Positions 25,191 through 48,674 of a DNA stretch of 64,000 nucleotides are shown here, piece after piece. Numbering within the stretch: position 1 is the first letter of the stretch; every line of letters starts with the position of its first letter. The DNA lies in assembly GCA_047495785.1 (NCBI GenBank), contig JBLDXI010000010.1:1116001-1180000 (forward strand), in the 5' to 3' direction. Source of the DNA: Lepidodermella squamata. Taxonomy: Eukaryota; Animalia; Gastrotricha. Under the pieces are notes generated by a model. That model did no database searches, was not told the DNA's origin, and saw only the letters and a program-made list of their open reading frames with translations. A program made the translations under genes and the position numbers.

Positions 25191-26622
25191 TCAAAACATG
25201 TGGGATGTTTCCAATTTCGCTGTTTTGATGAACAATCTAGCTTGCTCAGCTATAGAACGGAGGTGATCCAGTACAATTGCGTTGCTTTTGATAAAACCCT
25301 CGCGGTGATAAGGCAGGCCGTGTTTTTTCGCGAATTCTACCACTATCGGGGTAAGTTCCCGGTATCTGTGGCGGGGTAAACGAGGCATCAGGTGATGTAA
25401 GACTTGATATTGAAGGCCGCCGTGAAACCAGTCGAGCCATGCTGGTGTTTCAACATCGAGAGTTGTGATAAATTGATGAGCGACCCAATTATGCTCCGAT
25501 TCGAACTCGAAAACGGGCATGCTGACGTGAGACAGGTTGACTTGAATTGAAGCCATAGCAACGGCACAACTGGCTAGGGTTGCCCAGAGAAATAGAAGCG
25601 GCCAGGTGGGGATACACGATAGCAAATAGCTCTGCCACACTGCGAAGATGCAGAGGCCGAACCATTCAACAGGACGGGTCTGGGACGGAAAGGTAAAAGG
25701 CGGCCTCTGAAAAAGATAAACTAGGAATGAAATCAGTCTCATGCATAAAGTTTAAGTGAAATACCAAAGATTTCGCGATGAGCCCCAGCCGTGTGTAGAA
25801 AACCATCCAAGCGTAGTAAAGGTAGTGCTGAAAAATTGTGTTGAACTGGACAAATTTATTGAAGCGCAGCGTCGCCTTGTGGAAAGTTGAGTAAATGCCC
25901 TTGAAAAAGCGAGGTGACGGTGTAGTGAACGGCATCATTTGGATAACCGGGTCGTGTCTAGGATCATTCGTCATGAGATGATGAATGTTGTGGCGACTCT
26001 TCCACCAGGTTTGTGAAAGACCTCCGAAGACGCTGCCGAAAAAGCTGCCAACGTAAGAGTCGATTTTGCGGTTGTTTGTGACTTCATGATGGCCCATGTC
26101 GTGGAGGAAGAAGAAGATCGATTGCTGCCATACGAATCCCATTCCCAGCCCAGACAACGCAATAGGTAGAACGTACCATCCAGGTAAGATTTTCTCCCGA
26201 AATACCGTAAGGGAAAATGAGGCAACGAAGAATGAGAGAATTCCGAGGAAGTATACAATGTTGTAGAGAATGCTTGGTTGGAAGTAGCCTTTCTCATACA
26301 TTTCAGCTTGAAGCTTCCTGAAATCGAGTGAGATGGGATTGTTGAAGTAGCTCTCAGCCTCAGGTTCCTTTTCCTTGTCAATGACCAGCTTTCCAATGCG
26401 GTAGAGCGGCATTTGCTTCTCGATGACGCGAACTGGATGGTAGGCTCTGATTGCATCGGTCGCGTCCTTCTTTAGAAAATGCTCAATTGCTAATCGTCCA
26501 CCGGGATGACGATCCGCCCAGCTGGTCGCATCATAAACGTACAAATCGTTGACAACAAGCAACTTTCCTTGGTCGATTTCATCTTTCAGTTGCTGGAAGG
26601 AGAAATTCCGTAGGTTAACCAT
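25191..26622 (-). CDS. Cytochrome b5-fused front-end desaturase, delta-8 sphingolipid desaturase-like (copy 1; intron 25707-25764)
   Basis: HPGG heme motif; His boxes HDMGHH, WWKSRHNIHH, QVLHH; DWFHGGLQYQ; one phase-0 58-bp intron. Confidence 0.92.
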
Positions 26623-30027: not shown

Positions 30028-31584
30028 TTTCCAATCGTGTCAGGACCTTGTCACACGAAAAAGGATTATATTTTGGTTTTATCTGAGCGTTTGCAACCTT
30101 TTTATAGTCACAATTAAGTCTTGCGTGGGGAGGTCTGTTTGTTTGCACTGGCAAAGGATAACATGATTGGCACCAAAAGTTACAAAGGAAACTTGTTTCA
30201 GAAACGCGTGGGCAACATCACGAATTCCGTTTTTTTCGGCACCTGTTATCGGCAACTATTCCAATAATTGCGTCATACATGTCACTTGAACTATATATTT
30301 ATAATAGAATGATGAGCGAAAAAATTACACGACGGAGAAAAACTCTCATTACGTAACTACTATTTATGATCGGCGAGGTTTAGTATGATTAACTGGATTT
30401 GTCATAACACGAGCTTTCAGAAACTGTGTCACCGGACAAATAAGTTTTAAAAAACCAATTATTGAAGCTCCAGAGTTTTATTGTAGGAGTCGCTTTCAAT
30501 TTATCTGAGTACCTCAGAAGCTTCTATATTTAAATCTTACTTGGAAGGAAAATATCACTGGTTTAAATAACACGTGAGTCGCAGTAAGTAAGCACAAAAT
30601 AAATTACCCCTCAGCTTGAGAGGTCCAGACATATAAACCCTGACAAACAAGCACGAGGGACAATTTGGCCGATATTTTCGAGGCCGGCAATCTTCTCGAG
30701 GATCTTATTACTTCGCGCACTTATTAGCGTCTTCCTACGGTAAAGCGAATATGCTCAGCTTCTTTGAAAAATGAGACGAATGAAAAGTTTCCATATTTTA
30801 GCCAGATACTCATTTGAAAGAGGCATTACTAGTATTCATTAGTTCGTAGCTTAGGCTTAGTAGATGAGAAGCAACAGATAGCCATGGCGAGTCTCAAATA
30901 CAGCATTTACCACTACAACATTGGAAAAGCTTTCTTCTTTTTTTGTTATTTTTTTGTTATAAAATATCAAAATATTTTATTCTCGACTCTTCGAACATTT
31001 CACCATCTTCTCTTATTGACTCATTCTATTCATGTTTTCAGCTTGCTACCCAGTGCAACTTCTGGCCCTTTCTCTAGCGAAACACAGTCATAACTTAGGG
31101 CTAGCCAAATTCGCTCTTTTATCGCTTACTGCGTTTCTTTTTTTCTATTATCGTATTTGCTCGAGTCGTGGTCTGCGTTCTGTGTTTCACCGATATCTAT
31201 TACCACCATACAGGGGGGTTAGAAGCACGACCGTGTCCCTTATCTATTTTTTGGGCGTTTATCACCCAAGAAATCCGTCAGAGACATTCTTAACCTAGAA
31301 ACAGATGAAAAATTATACAACACTAAATTCGATTCATTTTCATCTAGCATCCAGTACCCACAATTTTGGCAGGTCTTCGAAATTGTAACTATGATCGCGA
31401 AAAAAATACTCGACTTCTACATTGTTTTGATTGAAATAAAGCCGGAAATAATTCAACACTTCGCCGCGAGGAATGAGAGCCCTCTCTTACAGCCCACGTC
31501 CTCTTCAGCCAGCTCAAGGAGCAACTAGCTCATAACCTGATGAAAATAATATTCCCCGATATTTTCGGTACAAAGGCATCAGCT

Positions 31585-31986
31585 ATGCATTATATCTCCG
31601 CGTTTTCCGTCGCAGCTTTCGTCGCTGTCCACCAGTGCTATGCATTCTACGTTCCACATCTTGTGAAACCGCTTCACGAAGACTCGCCTTTCGCCTACAA
31701 CGACCAGGACCTGCACGGGCCGGGGGATGACGGCCAAAACTACGACTTCTGGTCGAGTTTAGAAGACAGCAAGCAGAAGCGCGATGACGACTTTGAAGAT
31801 GAAATCTACGACGATGATTTGATCTCACTGATGAAGGATCAGAAGTTCAGGAGCAAAAAATCAGCTGGAACGCCGAAACTTGAACGAAAAAAGAGGTGGG
31901 TTCTCCGATGGAACGGACAAAAAAATGTCCACAGCGGTGCAAAATACAATAGAATGAACCAGTTCAATGATGATAGCAGTTACTAA
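31585..31986 (+). CDS. Prepropeptide (neuropeptide/secreted peptide precursor-like) P1
   Basis: Signal MHYISAFSVAAFVAVHQCYA, acidic spacers, KR and RKKR sites, C-terminal peptide WVLRWNGQKNVHSG... Confidence 0.78.
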   Translation: MHYISAFSVAAFVAVHQCYAFYVPHLVKPLHEDSPFAYNDQDLHGPGDDGQNYDFWSSLEDSKQKRDDDFEDEIYDDDLISLMKDQKFRSKKSAGTPKLERKKRWVLRWNGQKNVHSGAKYNRMNQFNDDSSY

Positions 31987-32352
31987 CCCGACTGCAGAAC
32001 TTTAAAATCCGGACTAATATCAATATAAATCGATGCACTGCTTTTTCACACCAGAATTTTGTTTACAGTCTCGAAATAAAAACAAAATGGCTTATCACGT
32101 CATGTTTTAATGAGCTGGGATTTGTGACATATCTTTTTTGGTCTAAAATCGATTGAGCTAAATCACGGATTGTTCTTTTTTTAATTATCCGCATAATCAA
32201 CCATTTGATCCTCGGCTAAAGCCACGCAAAATTAGCAATTTTCCTAGCTGCCCCGGAAGATTAATGCGAAATTGATAGAGGTTGCTCAGTTTTGTTCATT
32301 TTTTTTTCCTGAGCACAGTCTGATTTTTTTCTCGGAAATTTGTGTCTAAGGT

Positions 32353-32625
32353 ATGGCTTCTTACTTGAAAACATTCTTTGCCTTCGCGGCGATTGCTGCC
32401 CTCCTCATCGCTGATTTCGGCAGCGTTGAGGCAAGAGGTCTGAGCAACTACGAACGTAACCTTGTTGCCGCTCGCAACAGCCAACTTGGGAATATGATCA
32501 GCAACTCTAAGAGATCCGCTGGTCTTTATGACGGTGATGATGATGACGGCAGAGTTTGGCAGAAGCGCCGTCTTGGCGAGATGCGCAACAACAAGGCTAA
32601 GAACTTTGCTGCCATGGGACGCTAA
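32353..32625 (+). CDS. Prepropeptide P2, predicted amidated product
   Basis: Signal peptide; KR and KRR sites; ends LGEMRNNKAKNFAAM-GR* (amidation signal). Confidence 0.85.
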   Translation: MASYLKTFFAFAAIAALLIADFGSVEARGLSNYERNLVAARNSQLGNMISNSKRSAGLYDGDDDDGRVWQKRRLGEMRNNKAKNFAAMGR

Positions 32626-33948
32626 AACTTCAGATACAGAATTCTGAACTCAGAACTTGGCAGTATGCAACTGTGTTCGCTATAATTATTTGATATGATT
32701 AATATGTAGAGAAGAAGTTATTTCGATCAATAAAACCGAATGTAGTTTGTGGTACTGACTCATTATCTGATTCATTCGACAACATCGTATAATATATCGC
32801 GGACAGAAAGACTTGCCCAGAATAGTATCAGATGGCGTAATGCATTTGATACACCGAAAAACTGGCTTTCTAGTGATCAGGCGAGTGATCAGGCGAGTGG
32901 AGATGGAAAAAGTTAGTTTGACGCGATTTGTTTCTATTGCAAGCAAGTCGTTCTGTCGCGCGTCGCGTCCCCCTCTCTCCAGCGATATATCGGGATCATC
33001 TACAGTCTTATAGAGTTAGTCATCTACGAAAAATGTTTTAACACTGCCACCCGCTCATCTTGGCGAATTTTTCCGTGGTTGAACATTATTTTGAAAGCTG
33101 TAACCGCTAAGATTATGTGGTTCAAAGTAATGAGGATACCGTGAAAGAAAGAAGCGAAAAATTGATAAATTTGAAAAACTCAGTGTTTCCCATTTGCTGA
33201 AAATATGAGATTCGGCATTTGAAAATTGCTGATTAAACTTAAGAAAGTCAGTTCAGGTTTCCCGCTCTGGAAATGCGAGAAGCGCTTTACATGCACGTGA
33301 AATTCTTGGATGTTTATCGAAATAAGAGACAATTTCTCGGGCTATTTCCGCTTTTGAGATTGTAAAATCGAGAGTTTAGTGGAGAACATCAGCTAAATAT
33401 CAAATTGAGCAAAATTAACTACCTTGTAAATTACCGTTTGTCATTTTGCGAGCTACGTCAAAGTCTTTTTAACCATTTAAAAACGTAGCGATTACAGCTT
33501 CGAAAATCATCTCGGGCACTGAGAATTCGCAAAGATCAGTGAAATATTACACATTTTCGGACACGCTGAAGTAACGAGTGAAGACAATTTTAACCTCATT
33601 ATTTTAACATTGAAATTGCCAGACAGAGCGCCACAATTTCTACTAATTGCTGGCTGGATGAAAGAAGAAAAATTCCGAATTCTTTGTAAATCATCTTGAG
33701 GAGAAAGACATTTTGAACATATTTACGTAATATTGCAGACTCATGTGACTTTTAAAGGAAAAATAGCAAAACATGTTTTTCAAATTATCGAGCCGGATAT
33801 TACAGAATTAATGAAACGCCCGTAGCCACGTCAATCCATTAATCTGACCGTCAGTAAATCTGGCAGTTCCGAGAGTTGAACGACATTTTTGCAATCGGCG
33901 TTTTTCTGAACACGTTGTCATTTTTTTGACTTTTCTTTCGGCAAAGAA

Positions 33949-34161
33949 ATGAAGCTTTTCGCACTTTTTCTTGTAGTCGCCTTTGCGATTTTCGGATCAG
34001 TTTTTAGTTTCACGAACGACCGCGAGATTCAAGCTCTTGCAGATCTCTACGCGGATGACGCACGAGTTTTCTTTTCGCCATGGCAGAAGCGTCGGTTTGG
34101 AATGCGAAATTCGATGACTTCGAACAAAGTAAAAGGCGGAGTTTACCGTTCGAATAACTAA
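33949..34161 (+). CDS. Prepropeptide P3 (paralog of P2)
   Basis: Signal peptide; LYADDARV..WQKRRFGMRN..NKVK aligns to P2 LYDGDDDDGRVWQKRRLGEMRNNKAK. Confidence 0.82.
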   Translation: MKLFALFLVVAFAIFGSVFSFTNDREIQALADLYADDARVFFSPWQKRRFGMRNSMTSNKVKGGVYRSNN

Positions 34162-34378
34162 CTATAGATCTCAAGCGCGAATTACTCATGAATTAAAATT
34201 GCACCTAGTCATCCTGTTTCGTGTCAGCCCACGACTATGATTGATGGAATAAAATGTGTCAAGACGTAGGATGGGAAATGTGAAATTAGATCTTTTTATT
34301 GCTCTCTGTCTGCAGGCTACGCTTCCTGAACACCTTTTATTAGGCCGCTATGCAAGGTTTCGCTGACACTTTACGCAA

Positions 34379-34729
34379 ATGAGCCGCTCAATTTTCATTA
34401 TTACATTCTTTCTCCTTCTCAACCTTGCTGTGTCCCATGCAGGTGAGGACAGTAAGGTTGATCTTGAAGATAGTGAAGATGGAGATTTTTCAGATGAACG
34501 AGAGCTAGCGAAACGGTCCTCTGCCTTGGAAGAGGACGATAGCGATTCGTCTGACGACCGTGAACTAACAAGGCGATCATCAGACGAGGCCGTCGAGGAT
34601 CAACCTGACGAGGCAGATATTCTGGAAAAACGATCTGCAAACCGGGACAATTGGTACGGCCGTTCTGCCCTTAGCAACAGATACGCTGCGTCCAGAATGG
34701 GAAAGGATGTCAAAAGTCGAACAGCGTAA
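34379..34729 (+). CDS. Prepropeptide P4 with repeated acidic spacers and a cationic C-terminal peptide
   Basis: Signal peptide; RELAKR-SS, RELTRR-SS and ILEKR-S units; final peptide SANRDNWYGR... Confidence 0.85.
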   Translation: MSRSIFIITFFLLLNLAVSHAGEDSKVDLEDSEDGDFSDERELAKRSSALEEDDSDSSDDRELTRRSSDEAVEDQPDEADILEKRSANRDNWYGRSALSNRYAASRMGKDVKSRTA

Positions 34730-34930
34730 TTTGCTCCGGTTTCTCTCGCGCTTAATTTAATCAGACAGGCTTCGGGCTAAGTAAAGACTAATCACTTCGT
34801 TTCTTGATCCTGTGACACCCGTGGGCTAATCTATTTCGGATATAAAAAATTGAGAAATAAATACGCTTAATTGTTTTACTTTCAATTTAGCCACCCTATT
34901 ATATTTAGTAAATTTGTTGATACTTCGAGG

Positions 34931-35257
34931 ATGCAGATTGTCCTACCTATTGCCATCGCTTTTGTTGGCCTTCTCGCGTTATCGAATGCCGAGGATGAGT
35001 TTTCTATCGGCGAGGAAGATCTTACCGATTACACTCTGGAGCCATTTTTCAACGAACAAAGCCAGCAAATGGTTGACTATGAGCCTGTTTCGCGGAAACG
35101 AGCCGCCCGTCCGATCTATAACTTCAAAAGCGAAAATGCGGCGGACTTTGGGGCGCAGCCATCTGAATCGCGCAACATATTGCCGACCCGCGCAATTGGT
35201 ACGAACAATAGAATTCGCGGCTTCAGGCACTCGAAAACGAGCGAGACAAGCGAATAA
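34931..35257 (+). CDS. Prepropeptide P5
   Basis: Signal MQIVLPIAIAFVGLLALSNA, acidic propiece, RKR site, basic C-terminal region. Confidence 0.8.
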   Translation: MQIVLPIAIAFVGLLALSNAEDEFSIGEEDLTDYTLEPFFNEQSQQMVDYEPVSRKRAARPIYNFKSENAADFGAQPSESRNILPTRAIGTNNRIRGFRHSKTSETSE

Positions 35258-35414
35258 TGGGCAGAGCCCGTTACGGCCGTACACTTCAAACTCTTTTATT
35301 GTTGAATCGCAATAAGCACTTTCATTTATTCCAGAATAAAGAATCGCACGAGGCCAGCTTCCTGTTTCTATAATATTAGCCAATACAATATTAGCCAATC
35401 TATAATAATACAAA

Positions 35415-35717
35415 ATGGGAAAATTTTTGCTCGTGAGTGCGATTCTCATCGCTGCGATCAGCATATCAGAAGCCCGAAGCCGTTTCCAATGGTCTGGTAA
35501 GCCTGTTGGTTTCTTCCCGAGTAAGCAGAGAATGAGTCTGCTGGAGGACGACGGAGTTGCCCATGAGGAAAATCATTCATTCGACGCCCCCGAAAAGCGG
35601 ATGGTTCAATTCGCGCCCCGCCTACCCATGTACAACTATCCTATGATGAACAGTGAAGAAAATACAGCACAAGGACAATATTTTTACCGCATGTTCAAAC
35701 GGAGTGCAAAGCAGTGA
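35415..35717 (+). CDS. Prepropeptide P6
   Basis: Signal peptide; RSRFQWS-GK (possible amide); EKR and FKR sites flanking MVQFAPRLPMYNYP... Confidence 0.82.
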   Translation: MGKFLLVSAILIAAISISEARSRFQWSGKPVGFFPSKQRMSLLEDDGVAHEENHSFDAPEKRMVQFAPRLPMYNYPMMNSEENTAQGQYFYRMFKRSAKQ

Positions 35718-36431
35718 ACGGACACGTTTTTATGCATTAATCTTGCGAATTCCTCGTCCCTTTCAGCATTCAGCAATCATCCTATTCCCTTTGAAACCTC
35801 ACCGTTGTTGTACTTGCGAATTTGTAAACTAATAAAATGAAGAGCTTTATTACACAGAGTGTGTCCTTGGTAAACAAGATCTAGACTCTCGGGGGATTAC
35901 AACTCGATGGAGATGCGCGGGCTTACATCGATCAGAAGCCACAGGGGTGTAAATGCTGGTCATCACTCTGACGTCAATTTTCATAAAATCCAGGTATGGA
36001 CTGTTTGTTTGCGTCCCCTTCTTCTTCTTCACGCAAAAGTGGGCGTGATCATCTCGAAAATAAAATTCGCCATTATCGGCGGGCCCAATGATGCGAGGCG
36101 GCATGCTCCATGCGCAAATTAGCCCCTAGGGAGCCATTAGCCATTCAATTTTTATTCATTTTTTTCGCTAGCGATGAATTTCTCAATTCATAACATAGAT
36201 GCCTTCCGTGTTTTTTTCAAGACTGATGCAATTACAGAGCAGAGCTGTTAATGGGCGGAAACCATGTGGCTCTTTATCACACACACATCTTCCGTAAACA
36301 TTTGTCCTACGAACTTTCTAGAAGTCCTTTCACTTCAATCGTCTGCGTCATAGTGCCGCATCCGCGACCGGCTTCTAGCAGCTCTCTTTATTTAAACTCT
36401 TCAAACTCAAATAGGTTTTATTTTTGAAATT

Positions 36432-36689
36432 ATGACCTCAAAAGCATTCGTTGCCCTCACAATCCTCGCGGGTATTTTCCTACCTGCCTTATTGGTATCA
36501 GGCGAGGAAGAAATGAACGACTTGCTGCTTCATTTCATCGAAAATCGCGGCGAGGACGATGCTAATTACTTGCTGGACGACGATACCCGATTCGAGAAGC
36601 GATTCATCGGCTCTGAACCGTCACATGCAGTCGTGCGCCGTCTACTGAAAACTCGTTTCAACGACGATTTGGACTTGCTGGAGGACTAA
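36432..36689 (+). CDS. Prepropeptide P7
   Basis: Signal peptide, acidic spacer, FEKR site, then FIGSEPSHAVVRRLLKTRF... Confidence 0.8.
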   Translation: MTSKAFVALTILAGIFLPALLVSGEEEMNDLLLHFIENRGEDDANYLLDDDTRFEKRFIGSEPSHAVVRRLLKTRFNDDLDLLED

Positions 36690-36952
36690 GGCGCTGTTGA
36701 CACTCTAGTTTAGTAATCGATAATTTTGCAGTCTATCGATGTTAGAGAATTAATGAATAAAATTTTCTCTTATCCACCACTGATTTTTTTCATAATCTGG
36801 TATTCAGTCTATAATGCGGATAAACAAGGGCATTTTTCGTACGTATTAAAGCAAATCTTTTGATTGCTTTGGGGCGTTGGTTGCTTTTGGGACGGAGGCA
36901 ACATAAGGCTTTTTTGAGGTTTGTTATTTACTTCGGTTTTTTTCGAAAAAGG

Positions 36953-37153
36953 ATGCGTTTCCCCGCGGCGGTTTTCACCTGGACTCTGGTCGTTATAGCC
37001 ATTGTTTTCTGTGCTACCTTCAGCACGGCAAATGCCGAGCAGTATCAATACGACATGATTTCGGCCGACAAGCGCCCCCGTGAAAGCGCAGCCATGTACC
37101 GCAACCGAGACCGCCGCCGCTTCCCCTTCAACGTCTGGGGACAGGCAGAATGA
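36953..37153 (+). CDS. Prepropeptide P8
   Basis: ATG 36953 gives signal MRFPAAVFTWTLVVIAIVFCATFSTANA; DKR and RRR sites; FPFNVWG. Confidence 0.75.
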   Translation: MRFPAAVFTWTLVVIAIVFCATFSTANAEQYQYDMISADKRPRESAAMYRNRDRRRFPFNVWGQAE

Positions 37154-37326
37154 AATAGGAAATTCAATGGCAACTCGACTCAGTTACTAAGACTTTTATT
37201 CACAAAGCAATAAGGAAATATCGTCTATAGCTAACAACACCCCCTGAAATAGCGTAATCTAAGGAACAGTCAATAAAATTCTTAATATCGAGATTATTGC
37301 CGTTGTTTTTGCACTAAGCTTTTGCG

Positions 37327-37500
37327 TTACATGTAGGGGAACTCCTCTTCGGCTTGCTCGTCAAAGTTTTCTTCGTCCGATCCACCGTCGAAGAAGCTTC
37401 GCTTGATGTCAAAATTGTGCTTAGCGGCCGAGCTGTAGCCGATAGCCAACAGTGCAAACAGCATCAACATAATCAGAGTCGTGAGCTTAGTCATAGCCAT
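37327..37500 (-). CDS. Prepropeptide P9 (57 aa, not in the ORF track)
   Basis: Translated by hand: MAMTKLTTLIMLMLFALLAIGYSSA-AKHNFDI-KR-SFFDGGSDEENFDEQAEEEFPYM*. Start context caaaATGG. Confidence 0.78.
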   Translation of the reverse strand: MAMTKLTTLIMLMLFALLAIGYSSAAKHNFDIKRSFFDGGSDEENFDEQAEEEFPYM

Positions 37501-38419
37501 TTTGTTAATTAGTAATGATTACAAAAGCCTAAATTTGAACTGAGGTGTCAAAGTGAGATTATTTTGTGTGAAAAAAGGATTCCTTATTATCGAGAAAGGA
37601 ATTGCGTATGATTTCCTGGTAGACAGATGTTTTCGGTCTAATTTATTTGAGGAAAATCGTAACCTTTGTTTCTGGCTATCCAACTTGAAAATTGCGTGAT
37701 TAGGAAATACGGCCATATGTTAGCATTAATCATCACAAGAGGGTGTATCGATGGCAAATTCGCACTAAACAACACCGGAAACAAGCTGCGACGTAAGCAT
37801 CTTAAGAATGTCACGAGATATCGGAAACTGCGAAATGCGCAAGGCGCCGACCGGATGTTATGCGAAGTGGGCGCACTTAGGGACATAGGCTCGTATAACA
37901 GAAATCAGTGATTAATGTGCGCTGAGATCTCACGCTGCAGAACCTCGATCAAAATCAATTGAGTTGAGTTAAACTTACTTCTCTAACCATTGATTGAATG
38001 TTTCAATCTCAAGGCATTGATAATACCAATACCAAAACGTTATTTTTGAAAGATAACCTTAGTCCCATGAGAAGGTTTATCATGCCAATGTTTCAAGGCA
38101 CAAAATTCAAATGGCTGCGGCTGAATATAGATCTCCAGCTGCAGAATGATTGAGAGATTCTACAACGAGCAATGCAAGGCGCAACATTTTTGTAACTGAA
38201 TGCTGAGGGGGAGGGTAATATGAAACAGCTCTTTTCCTTTTTTTCTTGCTTTCCTGATGTGAAAAAATGAAGCAACTCAGACACTCTAATGCGAAATTTG
38301 AAGCCTGACTTTGACTTCCACGGAGAAATGAGCCAAAAATAATCGAAAGAAGTGATCCCAGGGGTCGACATATTTAGAAGAAGCATAAGGGTTTTGAAAT
38401 TGGACTAGAAAAAATGCCA

Positions 38420-38954
38420 CCCGTAGCAACAAAATGGTACTTGTTTCTGTATCATTCTGTAATTATGCAAACGAGCTTATCCTGTAAACTAGATACTATC
38501 TTGTAAACTAACTAGTCAGTATCATTTTTTCAAAGAAACAAGTTTTCCACTAAAATCCATAGAAAATTAAAATAATATCTGAGCAGGCTGCGGGATTTGA
38601 CCCTCTTTCACACATTCCAAATGCAGCCTCTCTTACCACTGAGCATCTGCTCTCTTACAATCTGTGTCCGATTTTTCGCTATTTAACATCGTTGGACATC
38701 TGAGCTCTTGCCAACTAAGAAAGTCCATAAAGAACATGAAAGCGGCCCCGCCGAATCGTATGGCTTTTTCAAAATCTTCGTAGCCATCACAGTTTCAAAG
38801 ATTAGGCGTTCAGGATCCAGTTAAATAGCAAGAAAAACGACACTGATTGTAAGAAAGCAGATGCTCAGTGGTAAGAGAGGCTGCGTGTGGAATGTGTGAA
38901 AGAGGGTTCAAATCCCGCAGCCTGCAGAAACAAGTAACATTTTGTTGCCACGGG
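38420..38954. mobile_element. Non-autonomous foldback/MITE-like DNA transposon (CMC/EnSpm-like) with tRNA-like arms
   Basis: Termini CCCGTAGCAACAAAATG...CATTTTGTTGCCACGGG, flanked by CA on both sides (possible 2-bp TSD). Inner inverted arms 38583-38687 and 38820-38925. Confidence 0.7.
38857..38925 (+). pseudogene. tRNA-derived sequence (A and B boxes) inside the foldback arm; mirror copy at 38583-38650 (-)
   Basis: GCTCAGTGGTA A box, GGTTCAAATCCCG B box, GCAG/CTGC ends. Stems are imperfect. Confidence 0.55.
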
Positions 38955-39139
38955 CACCCTTTGGAGCTGGGCCTAGTCAGAGCATTGATGGAAAGATTTT
39001 TTCATTTAAGAATACGTTTGTCCTATGGAGATGAGGTTTATTGATTGACGTGACATAGCATTGCGTGGCATCGACCTAAATTAATTTTTATGGATAAAAA
39101 TTGTCCAGATCCTTGATAGCAAACTACATCTATGGATGT

Positions 39140-39260
39140 TAGGAATCATCCCTACCAGTTCAATCATTCCGCACGGTCAACTCAATCAAGGGCCATAGGA
39201 TTGACTCTTTCGTCGATTTTCCTCATCCTTACCAGTTCTGCTACTTCGCTCTGTGTCTAG
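39140..39260. repeat. Diverged dispersed repeat; inverted partner at about 40800-40920
   Basis: atcatcccta..agttca and cgattttcctcatccttaccagttctgct match the reverse complement of 40800-40920 with the same ~70-bp spacing. Confidence 0.55.
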
Positions 39261-39737
39261 AAATTATCGAGGGAGACAGCTATCGAGAGCTTAGAGTTAT
39301 TGGTCTGAATAGAGTTATAGTGCCCGCGACCACTCATAGTCCTAAAAGAGGGTATCGAGAGCGGGCAGATATCGAAGGAGCACTAAAATGTATACTAAAA
39401 ACGTTGATATTACCACAAACAATTTGATATCGTTCAAATTGGCAAGTCGAATCACACGAATGCTCAGAACGGAAAAAACGAGAAAAGATACTGCTGCTTT
39501 CCTCTACTTTTCCTGAAACGAAGTTAAAAAAAGCAAAATAAGAACACGCAAATTATGGCATTCAATCGCATGATCCCCCTCTATTCGAGACAAAATAAAC
39601 TTCAGTCACGCGATATTTTTATTACCACATAAAGGCGGGTGCTTATCCACCAATTGAAGTGCACGGAAAGATGAAATCAAAAGTTCAACAGTTGGTGGGG
39701 GTGGATGAATAAACAAAGCCGATTCTGATAGAAGAAA

Positions 39738-39986
39738 TCATTCCCAAAATTTCCACCATTTAGGCGGGCTGATTACAGGATACCTCTGGCTGGCGGTCAA
39801 TGACAAATCTCCAGCAGCTTCTCCGTCTGTTCGTTTCCTTATGTAATCCGATAGCGATTCGTCAACCTCCATACGCTTGCGAATGTAGTCCGATAAATAA
39901 GTTGAAACATCGTCAGCATCTTCAGCAAAAACACTTGCGATGATAACAGCAAACGCGAGAAGAATTGAACTGAATTTAACTCGCAT
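39738..39986 (-). CDS. Prepropeptide P10
   Basis: Signal MRVKFSSILLAFAVIIASVFA; two LSDYI-RKR repeats; ends PPKWWKFWE. Confidence 0.85.
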   Translation of the reverse strand: MRVKFSSILLAFAVIIASVFAEDADDVSTYLSDYIRKRMEVDESLSDYIRKRTDGEAAGDLSLTASQRYPVISPPKWWKFWE

Positions 39987-40269
39987 TATTGGCGCGCTTA
40001 AAAAATAAAGAAATACGTCTGTCGCTGTGTGAAAAAATTGCCTTCTGGATTCTAAAAATGAGACACGACATGGCGATAACGCTTGCCTTGATCCCAACTG
40101 GACAGCAGTGCAATTAACACAAATGTTCGATTTTATTATTTAATTTCACACTGGTTGACTAATGGCGCTAGACATCACTCAAGTGATTGTCATATCCGGC
40201 CGCCTTTTTTCTTAAAATCAAGGAAATAAGAATTGATTTTGCGGCGGCGCATCAGTCCTGTTGTAGAAG

Positions 40270-40527
40270 TCAAAATAGCCATGCGGAAGATGGCAAGCTT
40301 TTCATATTCCTGTAGGCGTTTTGTGCTGCGGGATGCTGCCATTGAAAAATGTGTCCCTCGAATTCGTCGCCGTCATCCGATCGTTTTTTAGGCGATTCCT
40401 CAAAAAACGGCGAGTGGTGAAGTGGGGCTTCTGATCCGCGGTCCGAGGACAAAAAATGATCACCAGCGTGTATCGATTCAGCTGTCATCAAGCAGCCGAT
40501 CAAAATAAACAAAACAACCGATTTCAT
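40270..40527 (-). CDS. Prepropeptide P11
   Basis: Signal peptide, PKKR site, acidic then aromatic C-terminal peptide. Confidence 0.8.
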   Translation of the reverse strand: MKSVVLFILIGCLMTAESIHAGDHFLSSDRGSEAPLHHSPFFEESPKKRSDDGDEFEGHIFQWQHPAAQNAYRNMKSLPSSAWLF

Positions 40528-41373
40528 GATGCAATTTTTCGAAAGAGAAAAACAAAGCTGAGTGCTAAGGAAATGTTTTTATGAGGAAACTTCTCGACTT
40601 GGAAATAGGCAATAAATGATTTACATCCGGCACTGTATCGCGAAAGCCATAGCTCTTTCGCCATAAAAACGTCAACCTTAGAAATGCGAAGGAGTACGGT
40701 GAAGAGCGATACATACTTTTTTATTATTCATTCAGTTTAGCGTTTAGTTTTCCCAGCAATTAACAACCCTTGAAACAGGTCACGGCGGGCTGCTATGGAG
40801 CCAAGACAGCGAATTAGAGCAGTAGAACTAGTAAGGATAAGGAAAATCGCCTTAAAGGTCCCCCTTTTGTCTTTGGCTTTGAAGACTGAGACGACTGAGT
40901 GAACTAATATAGGGATGATCCATTCAGCTCAAAATTCTGTTCCTGTCCCTCGAATGTGGTTCTCCATTTCATGAAAGATCTTGAAAGACTTAAGCGGTAT
41001 ACTATCACGTCTTCGATCCCTTAATTGCTCAATAAGCAATAAGCTCTAAACTATATAGCTTCAATGAACTACAGTCAAGATCCTACTTTAAAGATACATT
41101 CGAAAGCATTTCAAACTCTTCCTTCGTCAGGTGTGGGCTGTTACCTATGAATTCATACGTTTATCACCGTGGAAATACAATGCTCTCACTGCACAAAGTT
41201 GAAAGTATGCCCATTTGGACGGTCAAGGCTGTATTTATTCATTAAAATGTTTTTAGCTGTACATAGCTCGATTCTTCATCAATGACATTGATACAATTCG
41301 AAAAATCCTGCTCCATGATTCAGGATGGCTCTTGCCATCTCACATTTGCAAAGATACAAATAAATGCGTTTAG

Positions 41374-41724
41374 TTATTCTCGTCCTGATCTCGATTTCGC
41401 TTGCCCGTTTCTCTTCCACATGAATTCTTCAGCACTAGTCATGAAAGGATCATTGCCCTGATGGTGGTAGAACCGTTTGAAAAGCTCGGCACTGCTTGCC
41501 CAAGGATCATCGCTTTGATGTCGAGTATCAAAGTCCCGCTTGAACAACTCAGCACTACTAGCCCATAGATCGTCACTTTGGTGGTAGCTGTGACTCGGAT
41601 CTCTTTTGAACACCTCCGCGCTACCAGCAAAAGGATCGGCGCTCTGATGATGTTCGAACCGTTTCTCCTGAGCTGAGATGATTGCGATAGTAAGGCAGGC
41701 CAAATAAACAGTTAATAATGACAT
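41374..41724 (-). CDS. Multi-copy neuropeptide precursor P12 (4 x HQxxD(P/L)(F/W)xxSAExF)
   Basis: Signal MSLLTVYLACLTIAIISA; five KR sites delimit four related peptides. Confidence 0.92.
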   Translation of the reverse strand: MSLLTVYLACLTIAIISAQEKRFEHHQSADPFAGSAEVFKRDPSHSYHQSDDLWASSAELFKRDFDTRHQSDDPWASSAELFKRFYHHQGNDPFMTSAEEFMWKRNGQAKSRSGRE

Positions 41725-42048
41725 TATATGTCTTAAAATTCGAATTTTCGTCTTGAAGAAGGAAAGACAAAAAACTGAAAAATATGTCCGCGCACTTTCA
41801 GTATACTTTGGCCTCTCGGGGCTCAGAACATTGCGGCTTGTCAATCAAGCGTGCGTAGGTTCCTAATTAATTTGACGCATCATTAGCGTGAAGCTACTCG
41901 GATGTCGGAGGCCTAATATAGCTTTGGCGGGGGGCTCTCGTGACTTCCGGCCAATTAATAAAAGTAGCTTTTTTTAACAAACATCACAAAAAGACGGATT
42001 CTACAACGAAAACATGAGACTTTTCTGAAAAATTGGTTTATTATCAGT

Positions 42049-42930
42049 TCAGTTGTGGCAAAACTCAAATCCTGCCACGTTGAATTCTGTTTTTGTAACT
42101 GTCGTCGTTGAGCTCACAACGTCGAAATACTTTGCTGCTGGTGAAGGTGAGCTGTAACAACATGATAACCAGGAAGCAAACTGGGAGAGCTTAAAATGAG
42201 CAATTCATTACGAATTTATTGAATAAACTTACACTTCCTGCCGTTGGAGAAACTGCGCTAGGATTGCCGTTATTAAAGCACGTCTCTGGGAATCGCGGGC
42301 AATAGGTTCTGGCTGCAGGGGTTGAAGTTGAGTATCCATCGGCAACAGCCGTCGCAGTACAAGCTCGCCATTGAGTGCCAGATGGGAAGCATGCTGCAAA
42401 TGGCCGACCGTTAACTGAAACTTGATCATAAACCGGCGAGCTACCGAGAGTAGTGCAACAAGTGCTGAAATCTGCATATGTTCCGACAGACTAAAAATTA
42501 TTCAGCTCAGAAGTTTTCTAAAATTTAGGATTAATCTTCATCTCAACCGTAGAAGCGTAAGGGCAGTTGAGCGTTCCTGTAAATCCTGGCGCGACGCAAA
42601 ATTTCAGATTTGTAACCGGGGACGCAAGATTAGTTGACGCGATTTGGCACATTGTAACAAGGGCCTGGAGGTAAAGAGCTCTAATTCAAATCATGAGTTA
42701 TTGGACATGAATTCAACCTGGCAGGTGATGTTTGATGCCGAGCATGGGTTCGTTGTGTTCGAGCAAGTTTGACCGGATGGGCAGGGATTTGACGTAGTTT
42801 TGCATTCCGTACCAGTCGGGCAAGACGTTGTTGACGTGGATGGGGATGTCGTGGGTACCGTTAGCGAAACTGAGCAGCCATTAGCAACTGCAATCACGCA
42901 GCAGCATAACAGAATGAGTTTAAACTTCAT
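42049..42930 (-). CDS. Secreted Cys-rich protein B (4 exons), mature chain begins CSVSL
   Basis: Manually spliced: signal peptide, Thr/Ser linker, MCQIASTNLASPVTNLKFCVAPG, FAACFPSGTQWRAC, YCPRFPETCFNN, ends EFCHN*. Confidence 0.82.
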
Positions 42931-42978
42931 GTTAAAAGTCTACAAAAGAATTATGATGGACTCAGTTCATTCCAAGGT

Positions 42979-43880
42979 TTAATTATGGCAAAATTCCTGT
43001 CCGGCATTATTGAAATTAGCGTTATTCGTGATCGTTGTAACAGGGCTAGCAGCACTTCCAACATAGTCAACAAACTTGGCCGGGGCTGCAGAACAGCAAG
43101 CGTAATATGACGCGAACTATCATCATGAGAAACACATGGAGCTATGAATCTCGACTAGTGTTTGAAACTCACGCTAGCTGGCGAGGCCGATATTGGACCA
43201 GCGGCGTTGTTGAAACATGTCTCTGGAAAGCGGGGGCAATATACCTTGCCTGCGGTCGCCGGGTTGTAGCCGTCATTTGTCGCGGTGACAGCGCAGGATC
43301 GCCATAGCGTGCCTGAGGGGAAGCATGCAGCAAACGTCTGGCTGTTGGATCGGACTACGTCGTAAACAGGGGTTCCGCTGAAGTTGGAACAGCAAGTTGC
43401 GAAATTGGGAAAATTGGCGTATGGCTGCCGATTAAAAAGCATAGTCTTCAAGTTAGTCTAACAATGAGGATGTTTTACCGTTGAGCCGTATGGGCACACA
43501 AAAGAGGTGCCAGACAACCCTGGGCCGACGCAAAATTTAAGATTCGTTATCGGCGATAGTAGATTTGTTGATGCGATGTTGCACATAGTAATATAGGTCT
43601 GCATTTTTCATAATTTGCTTTTCCACTTTTATCAGTCAGTTTAAATTGTCCTAACCTGACAGCCTGTTCCAGATCCGCACGACGAGGCTTGGCAAGTAGC
43701 TGGGCTCGTGCATGGGTTCGTTGTATTCAGGCAAGATTGAGTTGATGAACACGATGACGAGGATGATGTCGGGTTCGGCGTTGTAATTGTGAGCGACACT
43801 GAAACACTGCAACTATCCGCTGTCTTAATCAAGGCCAAAATCAAGCCGTAAATTGTAACAGTAAATTTTAAAGAGCTCAT
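42979..43880 (-). CDS. Secreted Cys-rich protein A (4 exons), tandem paralog of B
   Basis: Same exon structure. MCNIASTNLLSPITNLKFCVGPG, FAACFPSGTLWRSC, YCPRFPETCFNN, ends EFCHN*. Confidence 0.82.
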
Positions 43881-44560
43881 TCTCAGCGCAGAATTAAATA
43901 CAAATTTTTGATGTATATAAGAACATTGGCAAAAGGTGAGGTGATTACACCCACGCCCGAACTTTAGTCTCTGAATGTTGGGTTAACAAAGGCCAGGTAT
44001 ATTTTATCTAACTTCGTCTAATCCGCCACGCCATTATTGCTGCTACATGCAACGATCTCGAGATAATCCTTTGCATGCGTTACCATACGCCTGCTTTGCC
44101 TTCACTAGGGTATGTATAAGGCAGCTTTCATTAGGCACATTCATAACGAGACCTTTTTATAGTTTCCTTGTCATTGCATTCGTCCTAATTTCATTTCATT
44201 ATCATTGAAAAATCAAATGTTGTCTTGATGTGGTCACAGCTCTAAGACCTAATGATAGTACGCGTACCATTTTTACTCAATTTGTTGAAATAGAACATCT
44301 CATGAAGAGGAAGCTGCCAAAAGTTGTTATTATACAGCCAAAAAACAGTGGAAGGGTAAAAAAAGCTATATCCTTCTATTGCCATTTCCGCTTCCGCACT
44401 GATCTCAGACTTCTTGAGATGGCTGTCAAAAGCGTGCCGGAAGAGTCTGAAAGCCGCAGAAAGCCAAAACAATCCCACGCCCTTTTTCCATCGCGATTTT
44501 TTCGGCTCCACTGAAAGGTAAAAATTGTCATCCGAGACAGAACCATTCCAAACGTGAAAA

Positions 44561-44818
44561 ATGCATTTCTGGTCTGCTATCATTTGCGCCCTGCTAGCTG
44601 TGTTGGTTTGCTGCCAAGCCATGGCTATCAACAAGCGAACTGTCTTCGGCCATACAGCCAGCGATATGGACTTTGATGGGCCACCCTTCTACTTCGGCGG
44701 TGACGACGATGATGTTGGCCCAAATGATCTAGCCAAACGGGCTTTCCGCGGCCTTCCAAGGAAAATCACAGCGCAAGATTTGCTTTTCCGCCTACCCATT
44801 GAAGGCCTCAATCAGTGA
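44561..44818 (+). CDS. Prepropeptide P13
   Basis: Signal peptide, INKR site, acidic spacer, DLAKR site, then AFRGLPRKITAQDLLFRLPIEGLNQ. Confidence 0.83.
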   Translation: MHFWSAIICALLAVLVCCQAMAINKRTVFGHTASDMDFDGPPFYFGGDDDDVGPNDLAKRAFRGLPRKITAQDLLFRLPIEGLNQ

Positions 44819-45781
44819 ATCGATGTCACTTAATGCTATAACTCCAAACCCGGTCTAGTACGTATCGATTATTGTAATCCAGAGGCTGCCCTTAATGCGT
44901 GCTTAGAATACATTATCCGACGATTTATGCTAATAAAATACCAAGTGCCCCATAATAGGGCGGATTTTCTTCAAGACAAATGTTTACTTAACCGTTTTTT
45001 AAGATTTCGCAGACGACTTTAATGAGTCAATCGCTTCTATCTACGAATCTCCGTTCTCCGTACAGTCAAAATCAAGCGGCCTGTTAGGAATTAGGAGTAA
45101 TTCATTGCGAAGCTATATGTATTGAACATATCTATTGAACTGAGCTAAGGACCAATCGATGTTCTATTGGTTTTTGATACCTAATCAGACGTTTGACTAG
45201 CGTATTTGGACTTATCTTGAATTCAAAGCATTGGATACATTTGGGCGTTTAGACACTCGCTGAGCCAACTCGATAGTGTTAGCCAGGACAAAACAGTGCA
45301 AAGACAAACATTTCAATCATAGTTCAACTGCATTTTGCTTATTTCCGCAAAGGAAGCGCGTTAGGCGTTGCCGCGTGGTGTCTGCAAAGTTAGATCCGTT
45401 TCTGAGCCTAAATTAGCTATTTGCAAGTGCCAAGGGACTCGAAGTGAAATAGCTTTAGATTCACCTTCAAGAAGCGTGGGTATTTTTTAACTTCAGATTG
45501 CTTTTTCAGTCCAAGATCAGTCAAACGCATGTGGACTGCCAACTCATCGTCTGGCACCGACGTATTATCCCCAGAATGCTGTAATTTCAATTTTCCTTAA
45601 CTATGAACCTCGATTGACATAATGACACATTGCGCACTGGCCTCCGCGTCGGGCTTTCCATGATGAATCCCTAAGGTCCGCGATCAGTTTATTTAATCGT
45701 TTTTTCTCCATCACAATCGCCAAATCTCCAGCTCATTCCGCTTAGATTCTCAGACCTATTTTTTTACCCTCATCAGTAAAA

Positions 45782-46060
45782 ATGAATTCAAAACTCATCA
45801 TCGCTATGTTGGGCATTGCCTTCGCAATGGCTCTGAACTTCGAAGTTATCTCAGCGCAAGAAGAAGGCGAGCATATCGAAGATTACCCCGATGGTCGAGG
45901 CGACGATGATGCGATGAAGCGAAGCGTCAATATGCTCGAGGATGGCGGCGATCCGGCTGAATACGGCGAAGACCTAGCCAAGCATTTCGCCGAGTACTAC
46001 AACGGCGCGTCTCGGTTCCGGCAGAACAAGGCTAAATTCTTCGGCAAGGCTCGGGCATAA
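45782..46060 (+). CDS. Prepropeptide P14
   Basis: Signal peptide, acidic spacer, MKR site; ends RFRQNKAKFF-GK (possible amide), similar to P2. Confidence 0.85.
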   Translation: MNSKLIIAMLGIAFAMALNFEVISAQEEGEHIEDYPDGRGDDDAMKRSVNMLEDGGDPAEYGEDLAKHFAEYYNGASRFRQNKAKFFGKARA

Positions 46061-46376
46061 ACGAGAGACAAACTATTTTAACATCGATTGACATCGATAA
46101 TGCACTGAAATTTCGTTTGTGCGTATTGTTGTGAATAACTAAAATGTCTATGCTAACGGCTAGTTTTAATTCAATCCAACTTCCGCCCGCTTGTTATAAT
46201 ATCATCACCCGCGCCAGTCGCAGTCAATAAAATCTATAATAAATGATTTATGATGACGAAAGCGCGGCGATAGTTTTCAAATACGCACTCAAGCTTCCGG
46301 CCACTTGTTAGCCAGAACAAAATAAAACCTGACAGCCTCCGCACGTTTTTTTCACAACAACATCACAACACACAAA

Positions 46377-46760
46377 ATGGCGTGTAATTTGTTTCGCACA
46401 ATCGGCGAATTGCGATTCATCCACATGTTTGCTGTTTCGTTCATCGCGGCGCTTGTTGTTTTTGTTCTTGGGGTTGGAATTTTCACCTGTCCTGTTTCAG
46501 CTGATGAGGAAGATACGGCGTCTCATGTTCACCCTGCGAACTTCGACTACGAGGCGATTCGAGACGAGGACGATGATGCGATAACGCCTGTTTATCAAGC
46601 CAGTGACAAGGCTCGGTCGGATTTACTACTTCAATTGGCTAGATACTTTTATTACGACAGCATGTCTAGTCGAAACCGTAACAGCTTTTACTCCACGGCG
46701 AAAACTTACAATTTTGGCGCGCAGAATGAGCTTTACCCTGGCCTAGCAAACTTCAAATGA
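46377..46760 (+). CDS. Secreted propeptide-like protein P15
   Basis: Hydrophobic signal ending VSA, acidic propiece, Tyr/Arg-rich C-terminus. Only monobasic sites. Alternative ATG at 46425. Confidence 0.72.
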   Translation: MACNLFRTIGELRFIHMFAVSFIAALVVFVLGVGIFTCPVSADEEDTASHVHPANFDYEAIRDEDDDAITPVYQASDKARSDLLLQLARYFYYDSMSSRNRNSFYSTAKTYNFGAQNELYPGLANFK

Positions 46761-47423: not shown

Positions 47424-48674
47424 ATGGCTGAAGACCCTGATCAAAACAATCTAAAAGATATAGCTGACGAAGGTCAGCGTCTCTTGAAGTCCGAAGCTCC
47501 TGGGTGGCATCAAGAGGTCGGGCGCAAGGCGATAGAAATCGCTGACAAGGAAATAAAATTTGCTGTTATCGGAAAAACGCTGTGCGGCAAAACTGAATTC
47601 ACCAGGCAGTTTCTACCCGGGTGCAAAGAGGTTACGGAGAGTGGCATTGAAACGGGGAACAGAACCAGTATAGTCAAACTCTGCCACCATCCTGAGATCG
47701 AGAACATATCTGTCGCAGACATTCCTGGCATTGGCTATGGGGAATACGCTAATATGGAGGCTGATGAGTACTTCAAGAAGCTGAAACTCGATGATTATGA
47801 CGCCTACGTACTCATGTTCCAGGAGCAATTCATCGACCGAGAACTGCAGTTGTTCAATCGAATCGGAACAACTCTCAAACCTGTCCACCTAGTCTGTTCG
47901 AACTTTGATGTCGCCCTGTTCAAGCACCGGAAGAAGCACCCTGAAGCAACGCCTGATGAAGTCAAATCTGTGCTAAGGGCGTACGTGTCACGTGAACTCG
48001 AGGGGCAGCGAATTTACTTTGTCGATAATACGGAGCCTGAGATGTGGGATTTTCCAGACTTGGCGCGTGACCTTAAGCAACTGCCTGATTATTTCAAACG
48101 GTTGGTTGCCATTTCATCTGTTTTCAGAGCCAATCTGAAAAGCGTCGAGCAGCAAGCAGATGCTATGCGCAAACAAGCTTGGTTCATCGCTACAGCAAGC
48201 GCTGTCACTGGATTGATTCCGCTACCCTTCGTAGATATGCCGATTGATGCTGCGCTTATCATTTACATGGCATCGCGCTATGCTAAGTCGTTCTGTCTGA
48301 CCGAAAAAGCGATGAAAGCTCTTCTGGCTCAATTTAAAATCAGCGAAGACCAAGCGCCTTCAATTAGGAGCAAAATGAAGTACTGCTCTCAAGATTTCAA
48401 GCAAATGGTGAAAGAAGCGTTCAAGAGTAAAGCGAACTGGCTGAGATTTTTGAAGGTCATTGCATTTGGTAGCATTCCGTTGCTTTTGTCATCCGCCGAC
48501 GATTTCATCAAAGCTATCCCTATTGTTGGACAAATAATAGGCCCTATTATTGGGGCCCCTGCTGGGTATGTCTCAACGCTGTTGCTGCTGCGGCGCATCA
48601 TAGAGTGCCTCGAACAGGACGCCAAAGTTTTGGTTCGTGAGATCAACCGTTTGAAACCACAGAAAATTGAATGA
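47424..48674 (+). CDS. Immunity-related (IRG/IIGP p47-like) GTPase, intronless
   Basis: G1 GKTLCGKT, HPEIENISVADIPGIG (G3), YD.Y, G4-like SNFD, WDFPDL, and hydrophobic C-terminal helices (GLIPLPFVD; IPIVGQIIG). Confidence 0.85.
   Translation: MAEDPDQNNLKDIADEGQRLLKSEAPGWHQEVGRKAIEIADKEIKFAVIGKTLCGKTEFTRQFLPGCKEVTESGIETGNRTSIVKLCHHPEIENISVADIPGIGYGEYANMEADEYFKKLKLDDYDAYVLMFQEQFIDRELQLFNRIGTTLKPVHLVCSNFDVALFKHRKKHPEATPDEVKSVLRAYVSRELEGQRIYFVDNTEPEMWDFPDLARDLKQLPDYFKRLVAISSVFRANLKSVEQQADAMRKQAWFIATASAVTGLIPLPFVDMPIDAALIIYMASRYAKSFCLTEKAMKALLAQFKISEDQAPSIRSKMKYCSQDFKQMVKEAFKSKANWLRFLKVIAFGSIPLLLSSADDFIKAIPIVGQIIGPIIGAPAGYVSTLLLLRRIIECLEQDAKVLVREINRLKPQKIE

Follow-up and report, generated by a model that had tools for sequence, protein, structure and literature searches.

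What are fifteen small secreted-peptide precursors, hardly any of which resemble one another, doing side by side in a single stretch of an animal genome, and how did they come to be there? The locus in question occupies positions 31585-46760 of a 64,000-nucleotide piece of the genome of the gastrotrich Lepidodermella squamata (GenBank assembly GCA_047495785.1, contig JBLDXI010000010.1, positions 1,116,001 to 1,180,000 of the forward strand), which we call the window and in whose coordinates the positions of the locus are given. A previous reading of the letters alone, hereafter the sequence-only reading, had proposed that it holds a cluster of 15 mostly unrelated peptide-precursor genes with intronless coding sequences. 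The published assembly of the species has 122.8 Mb in 157 contigs, a GC content of 43.3%, and 28,377 BRAKER gene models, and peptides are nowhere mentioned in the genome paper (PMC11660948). The genome that we searched amounts to 121.2 Mb, in 151 contigs, with a GC content of about 43%. We confirm that the 15 open reading frames (ORFs) are real genes, that their reading as peptide precursors is well supported, and that at least nine of them are expressed. The cluster is an unusually dense and heterogeneous assemblage of lineage-restricted genes of a familiar kind. The probable explanation, in our judgement, is an old tandem array of 15 genes for convertase-processed, cysteine-free, and mostly non-amidated secreted peptides, with signalling as the favoured function.

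The ORF list of the window contains all 15 short precursor ORFs (57-133 aa) where they had been proposed. We numbered the genes of the locus g01 to g17 along the forward strand (see the table): the precursors are g01-g12 and g15-g17, while g13 and g14, located inside the cluster, are of another kind. The whole array covers about 15 kb, at a density of about one gene per kb, and it is organised in blocks of orientation, with g01-g08 on the plus strand, g09-g12 followed by g13 and g14 on the minus strand, and g15-g17 on the plus strand again. A polyadenylation signal (AATAAA or ATTAAA) lies 52-165 nt past the stop codon in 15 of the 15 precursors; in the case of g13 none was found within 300 nt. 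Rfam and tRNA scans of the window gave nothing. We then asked if such ORFs are frequent around the cluster, using a mechanical filter with fixed settings: an ORF had to begin like a signal peptide, be no longer than 170 aa, contain one or more KR or RR pairs and 10% or more of Asp+Glu, have no more than one Cys, lack any further hydrophobic segment, and be followed within 220 nt by a polyadenylation signal. Over 264 kb of the contig the filter returned 13 matches, all within the cluster; the 249 kb that surround it and served as background gave none. The cluster is unique within these 264 kb.

The common architecture of the precursors is easily recognised. All 15 have an N-terminal hydrophobic core within the first 30 residues (Kyte-Doolittle mean over 10 residues of 2.46-3.49) and none has a second hydrophobic segment. 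Past the signal peptide, the content in Asp and Glu ranges from 9 to 28%, and there is no Cys in a total of 1056 residues. This agrees with the earlier proposal of a signal peptide and an acidic region in each ORF, the former as judged by a hydrophobicity heuristic. Dibasic sites had been reported in 14 of the 15 ORFs, and we find them in 14, the exception being g17.

Proteins of this composition could also be small secreted, disordered, and acidic proteins acting intact, in ion binding, matrix, or cuticle, whose dibasic sites are incidental. Their high content in Asp, Glu, and Ser, the lack of any predicted domain, and the absence of dibasic sites in g17 would fit such a role. However, we count 24 Lys-Arg pairs in the post-signal parts, nearly five times the number obtained by shuffling residues (5.1 +/- 2.1), whereas Arg-Lys, Lys-Lys, and Arg-Arg occur as often as expected by chance. 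An excess restricted to Lys-Arg is therefore not a consequence of composition; it is the signature of selection for sites of the kexin, furin, or proprotein convertase (PC) type. The position of the sites points in the same direction: KR or RKR directly follows each repeat unit in g12 and g10, and the three units of g04 close with KR, RR, and KR. These results make the action of intact proteins very improbable, and they bear out the claim that the layout is the one of convertase-processed prepropeptides. The repeat units of g12, g10, and g04 are themselves acidic, which suggests that the regions rich in Asp and Glu are probably products in some of the precursors and not mere spacers.

Short ORFs without homologues, six of which are known from the ORF itself, might also be chance ORFs, parts of non-coding transcripts, or exons of larger genes. 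Sequencing reads placed on positions 31540-37539 (6 kb with nine ORFs, g01-g09) leave next to no room for this. We used one DNA run (X1), which covers every bin, and three SMART cDNA libraries from whole animals (X2, X3, and X4), where the loose ends of the reads are poly(A) runs and the SMART oligonucleotide, the latter in two cases with a GGG behind it, as is left by template switching. The cDNA contigs span all nine ORFs, the longer intergenic gaps are empty, and no splice joint was seen. The first nine genes are thus expressed and unspliced. The best example is g02, which has the highest contig depth of the region and whose unspliced transcript begins at 32288, with a template-switch oligonucleotide and GGG, and is polyadenylated at 32751. 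The 5' end of g08 carries the same oligonucleotide at 36905, and the transcript of g04, seen in X2 and X3, is polyadenylated at 34873. Both of these poly(A) ends come around 20 nt past signals of the AATAAA/ATTAAA type. For the other genes, cDNA contigs were found in X2 and X3 for g01 (from 31540 or 31610 to 31856), in X3 (from 34889) and X2 (35075-35291) for g05, in two libraries starting at 35406 and 35407 for g06, and in X2, X3, and X4 for g09. Since the template-switch oligonucleotide sits directly on genomic sequence at the 5' ends, these mRNAs have no spliced leader. One cDNA contig spans 37121-37409, which means that g08 and g09 are convergent genes with overlapping 3' ends. The spacing can be tight, e.g., there are 16 nt between the poly(A) end of g04 and the start of the g05 cDNA.

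The transcripts contradict chance ORFs for g01-g09, where signatures of cap and poly(A) ends bound single ORFs without joints. More generally, the polyadenylation signals of all 15 precursors and the failure of the filter to find similar ORFs in the 249 kb around them argue against this explanation. The sequence-only reading regarded the absence of transcripts as fatal to its proposal, and they are present for these nine genes. For the rest of the array the evidence is indirect: 58% of the words of positions 41300-45300 are present in library X2 and 36% in X3, which fits transcription of g12-g15. Introns are absent from the coding sequences of g01-g09 according to the cDNA, and from those of g10-g12 and g15-g17 according to the continuity of their ORFs. 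This part of the earlier claim stands. The contrast that had been drawn with intron-rich genes nearby is a weak one, since long single ORFs also make up most of the neighbours in the window.

The differences between the sequencing runs and the assembly provide an independent view of the coding capacity. Among the 40 best-supported of 108 differences, which makes the counts a sample, 35 fall within ORFs, and 27 of these are synonymous against 8 non-synonymous, when 21% synonymous would be expected if single changes fell at random in these ORFs. All listed differences are synonymous in g05 (8 of 8) and in g06 (4 of 4). There are 7 synonymous and 4 non-synonymous ones in g01, 5 and 2 in g03, and 2 and 2 in g08, where the non-synonymous ones affect the signal peptide. 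In addition, the nine listed indels all lie outside the ORFs, even if these account for 42% of the 6 kb (probability by chance of about 0.01). At some of the differing places both alleles are found in the DNA run. The reading frames are under purifying selection and, together with the transcripts, this renders chance ORFs or stray exons scarcely credible.

The genes being real, do they share an ancestor? The sequence-only reading described them as mostly unrelated, and by BLASTP this is nearly exact: among the 17 proteins of the locus, the only matches are between g02 and g03 (E 9e-5) and between g13 and g14 (E 3e-13). Smith-Waterman alignments compared with segment-wise shuffles reveal a fainter kinship. 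Seven of the 136 pairs have z>3, an excess, namely g13/g14, g02/g03 (z of 5.8), g16/g17 (5.35), g07/g16, g04/g16, g02/g11, and g05/g06, and four of them are physical neighbours. The faint pairs g16/g17, g07/g16, g04/g16, and g05/g06 have z between 3 and 5.4. Hence, the description holds for plain similarity, and it has to be tempered for g02/g03, g05/g06, g16/g17, and the group of g04, g07, and g16, which stand above shuffles. At the DNA level, an all-against-all blastn found no similarity between gene units or between their flanks. A DNA search of the whole genome found no copies of the peptide genes elsewhere, the only matches being with dispersed repeats between genes, and g02 and g12 are single-copy. 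The most likely origin, judging from these comparisons, would be tandem duplication long ago and very rapid divergence since then, of which the architecture and the faint similarity of neighbours are what is left. Some members may conceivably have arisen de novo.

Dispersed repeats fill the larger gaps of the array (see the table). Their copies occur on many contigs and are 73-82% identical, with a few short stretches reaching 94%, and some match on both strands, as do miniature inverted-repeat transposable elements. The depth of the DNA run has a peak at 32740-32939, close to the repeat at 32802-32959.

As to regulation, the co-regulated locus that had been proposed did not emerge from our data. 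The search for a shared upstream motif by k-mer enrichment gave a T-run only (TTTTTTC in 7 of 17 genes, not significant after correction). The search for a promoter cassette, by all-against-all blastn of the gene units, matched physical overlaps only. Members also differ between libraries: g03 was found in X2 (contig 34029-34183) and not in X3, and g07 in X3 (contig 36494-36755) with a depth of zero in X2. Contig depth in X2 ranges from around 25 to 990 among genes, although this measure reflects expression poorly.

We searched for relatives of the precursors outside the cluster. We looked up the exact sequences of eight precursors and of two neighbouring genes in a collection of 15 billion proteins, and none of them is present. 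A word-based homology search with g12 in a very large protein collection revealed no homologue. An exhaustive HMMER search with g05 had a single match (E 2e-5), in eight repeats of a repetitive protein of 1817 aa, which we judged compositional and rejected as a homologue. Searches of Pfam, NCBIfam, and PDB sequences with the precursors gave nothing meaningful. The sequence-only reading had recognised none of the mature peptides, and neither do these searches, which matched no known peptide family. The neighbours of g01, g04, and g12 according to a protein language model are assorted neuropeptide precursors (allatostatin, tachykinin, PBAN, PDH, diuretic hormone, TRH, and CAPA), with scores of 0.78-0.89 that are below the reliable range, so we take them as leads only.

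One could then think that each ORF is a diverged orthologue of a described bilaterian neuropeptide family. Gastrotrichs are long-branched (PMC11660948), which could mask orthology. We give this a very slim chance: no Pfam neuropeptide family is matched even at E values up to 1, no canonical C-terminal motif occurs among the predicted products, and g12 and g05 lack homologues in very large protein collections. We found no study of neuropeptide or secreted-peptide precursors of gastrotrichs in the literature searched, nor usable literature on clustered neuropeptide genes. The sequence-only reading had also proposed a comparison of synteny with relatives. Using the adjacent desaturase as a landmark, we found only full-length matches of 27-35% identity in metagenome contigs, and therefore no close relative among them. 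A contig in an ENA metagenome (ERZ23486764) encodes a beta-hydroxylase 66% identical to the one of L. squamata (see below), next to the same carboxylesterase neighbour, with 43% GC and single-exon genes. Its source is probably another gastrotrich, and such contigs might hold orthologous peptide loci.

What do the peptides do? We infer their cleavage, secretion, and function from the features of the precursors, and put intercellular signalling (neurocrine, endocrine, or paracrine) somewhat short of an even chance. The points in its favour are the short Cys-free precursors, the multi-copy units, the aromatic C-termini that immediately precede cleavage sites, and the neighbours according to the language model. 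The alternative is that the peptides are exocrine products of glands or of the epidermis, such as host-defence, adhesive, cuticle or scale, egg or mucus components, or pheromones, instead of neuronal or endocrine signals. It is suggested by g01-g05, and partly g16, i.e., five or six precursors where an acidic propiece is followed by a cationic C-terminal peptide (net charge of +2 to +5 in g01-g05). Such an acidic propiece with a cationic tail is the layout of many precursors of defence peptides and toxins. It is also suggested by the high contig depth of some members in whole-animal cDNA, with the above-mentioned caveat on this measure, and by the presence of g13 and g14 within the cluster. 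These two paralogues belong to a family with 109 matches genome-wide (on contigs C11, C29, C42, and C54), have a sub-threshold match to the New_glue family of Pfam (Drosophila), and could be small secreted proteins of a mucin- or glue-like nature.

Against an exocrine role, the cationic peptides are polar, with a mean Eisenberg hydrophobicity of -0.18 to -0.41, when two classical membrane-active peptides, taken for comparison, score above zero on the same scale. Polar and non-amphipathic cationic tails together with the absence of disulfides make classical membrane-active defence peptides or knotted toxins unlikely; without Cys, the products are not disulfide-rich toxins. Most other products are acidic or neutral, including the end products of g07, g09, g10, g11, g12, and g15, and the language-model neighbours, a weak lead, are precursors of neuropeptides and not of defence peptides. 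We thus hold exocrine use to be possible and rather doubtful.

Two modifications bear on the nature of the products. The sequence-only reading saw several Gly-basic amidation signals. Only g02 ends with a classic Gly-Arg-stop; in g04, g12, and g16 Gly is followed by a single basic residue, and the remaining precursors lack Gly-basic sequences. PAM-type amidation would therefore concern at most a few products, from one to four. The second modification is putative. Tyrosines occur in an acidic context in 14 of 44 cases, against 7.3 +/- 2.4 in shuffles (P around 0.008), with no enrichment for Phe or Trp. Examples are EIYDDD, LSDYI (twice), TDYT, VDYE, EDYP, FDYE, and LYDGDDDD. This is the usual context of tyrosylprotein sulfotransferase and hints at a theme of sulfation, which we regard as a lead only; the C-terminal motif of sulfakinin is absent from the predicted products.

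Under the favoured explanation of convertase-processed signals, each gene would be independently transcribed, without introns, into a short mRNA, with a cap and a poly(A) tail, that encodes a secreted prepropeptide. The signal peptide would lead the product into the secretory pathway, where convertases of the furin/PC type would cut after Lys-Arg, less often after Arg-Arg or three basic residues in a row, and a carboxypeptidase would trim the basic residues. This would free linear, Cys-free peptides of around 10-50 residues, many of them acidic with Tyr or another aromatic residue, and amidation would be possible for the few mentioned above. A search for the convertase P-domain (furin/PC) gave 10 matches in the genome. 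There are also 41 matches to Cu2_monoox_C (PF03712), the best of which is an orthologue of tyramine/dopamine beta-hydroxylase, and no bona fide PAM was singled out among them.

Several points weigh against this explanation and have to be kept in mind. The signal peptides were judged by a hydrophobicity heuristic. The classic amidation signal is nearly absent, when amidation is common in protostome neuropeptides. No product resembles a known bilaterian neuropeptide in the Pfam and NCBIfam searches. Two glue- or mucin-like genes are embedded in the cluster. Transcripts were directly observed for nine of the 15 genes, the other six being known as ORFs, and the variant counts come from the above-mentioned sample of differences.

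How does the locus compare with known systems? The precursors of neuropeptides and prohormones of invertebrates, e.g., those of the allatostatin, tachykinin, and FMRFamide types, are alike in their signal peptide, acidic spacers, flanking Lys-Arg, short Cys-free form, and several related copies, as in g12, g10, and g04. They differ in that the precursors of the cluster are unrelated in sequence to known families, have almost no Gly-dibasic amidation sites, and give many products that are long (20-50 aa) or strongly acidic. Furthermore, neuropeptide genes of different families are normally dispersed in genomes, whereas here 15 different precursors lie side by side. Clusters of short secreted effector peptides, such as nlp-27 to nlp-31 and cnc in Caenorhabditis elegans, the Bomanin cluster at 55C in Drosophila, and the arminins of Hydra, are alike in being compact arrays of tiny, lineage-restricted, and fast-evolving genes, some with an acidic propiece followed by a cationic peptide. 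However, their members are plainly paralogous, with a common signal or mature motif, whereas paralogy is nearly erased in L. squamata, and the products described here are neither Gly/Tyr-rich nor amphipathic. Finally, the vertebrate cluster of secretory calcium-binding phosphoproteins (SCPP), which encodes secreted, acidic, and disordered proteins, arose by tandem duplication and rapid divergence. It resembles our locus in being a single locus with a common gene architecture and hardly any sequence in common, but SCPP genes are multi-exon, their products mostly act intact (in mineralised tissue, milk, or saliva), and they lack the Lys-Arg organisation.

Table. Genes and other features of the locus and its surroundings (window coordinates; n, number of sites).
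Feature	Position	Strand	Description
Desaturase, copy 1	25191-26622		Cytochrome-b5-fused front-end (delta-8 sphingolipid-type) desaturase
Desaturase, copy 2	28543-30027		Same type
g01	31585..31986	+	133-aa prepropeptide, possibly starting at 31540 instead; signal, two acidic segments with Tyr, sites KR and KKR, C-terminal peptide of 29 aa; poly(A) signal 88 nt past stop
g02	32353..32625	+	90-aa prepropeptide; C-terminus ...FAAM-Gly-Arg-stop; distant paralogue of g03
Dispersed repeat	~32802-32959
g03	33949..34161	+	70-aa prepropeptide; core ...WQKRR(L/F)G.MRN in common with g02
g04	34379..34729	+	116-aa prepropeptide; three acidic units closing with KR/RR/KR, then a +5 C-terminal peptide
g05	34931..35257	+	108-aa prepropeptide; acidic propiece, RKR site, C-terminal peptide of 51 aa
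g06	35415..35717	+	100-aa prepropeptide; KR sites (n=2)
g07	36432..36689	+	85-aa prepropeptide; KR and RR sites
g08	36953..37153	+	66-aa prepropeptide; KR and RRR sites; C-terminal FPFNVWGQAE
g09	37327..37500	-	57-aa prepropeptide; KR (n=1), then an acidic 23-aa peptide; poly(A) signal at +126
Dispersed repeat	38563..38923		Gap between g09 and g10; matches on both strands
Dispersed repeat	~39115-39259
g10	39738..39986	-	82-aa prepropeptide; two ...LSDYI-RKR units, aromatic C-terminal peptide; poly(A) signal at +114
g11	40270..40527	-	85-aa prepropeptide; KKR site, C-terminal peptide of 36 aa
Dispersed repeat	~40804-40921
g12	41374..41724	-	116-aa multi-copy precursor; four related acidic peptides of 17-20 aa, HQS.D(P/L)(W/F)..SAE.F, with KR after each
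g13	42691..42930	-	79-aa Cys/Ser/Thr-rich secreted protein; no dibasic site, not acidic
g14	43641..43880	-	79-aa Cys/Ser/Thr-rich secreted protein, paralogue of g13; no dibasic site
g15	44561..44818	+	85-aa prepropeptide; KR sites behind a stub of 2 aa and behind an acidic segment
g16	45782..46060	+	92-aa prepropeptide; KR (n=1); C-terminal part with ...AKFF-Gly-Lys
g17	46377..46760	+	127 aa (111 aa from 46425); acidic secreted protein without dibasic site; poly(A) signal at +52
IIGP/IRG-like GTPase	47424-48674	+	Single-exon, 416 aa; Pfam PF05049, E 2e-19; directly downstream of the cluster
Desaturase, copy 3	57619-59247		Same type as copies 1 and 2

The surroundings of the cluster and the rest of the genome hold a few other genes of interest. 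One of the three desaturase copies is intact, with a single ORF of 494 aa. The best matches of the desaturase are in chytrid and zygomycete fungi, at only around 36% identity; Trichoplax has 32%, and no other animal is named among the top 120. The C-terminal half of the IIGP/IRG-like GTPase is hydrophobic. Most of the 41 matches to PF03712 lie in a tandem array on contig C13 (1.99-2.36 Mb of that contig, e.g., 2310022-2313462) and the others elsewhere. The best match, the single-exon gene for the tyramine/dopamine beta-hydroxylase, encodes a protein with 45-48% identity to its counterparts in arthropods, brachiopods, molluscs, and nemerteans. We take the N-terminal part of the members of the array to recall temptin, a candidate likeness only. 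That PHM/DBH-like enzymes are so greatly expanded in a genome with many secreted peptides merits attention. Only four Wnt loci were found in the genome, three of them in long open frames. The Wnt genes and the protostome-like beta-hydroxylase mark the genome as that of a bilaterian, probably a protostome, and help to exclude a sponge, placozoan, ctenophore, appendicularian, or fungal (KEX2-repeat protein) origin.

A bolder view, which is speculative and which we consider unlikely, is that the locus is one of many "peptide nurseries" of gastrotrichs, i.e., compact chromatin neighbourhoods where genes for secreted peptides arise and diverge until the signal peptide, the Lys-Arg sites, and the acidic Tyr motifs are what remains. 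The resulting repertoire would be large, non-amidated, possibly Tyr-sulfated, used in signalling or chemical communication, and restricted to the phylum, unmatched by any described neuropeptide family of bilaterians.

The Gastrotricha are the sister phylum to flatworms, and the cluster offers a first view of their peptide repertoire, with 15 candidates and around 35 predicted products that peptidomics and in situ studies can target. It also provides a clean example of tandem genes for secreted peptides that diverged until the processing architecture alone was kept, and thereby has a bearing on how new peptide signals originate.

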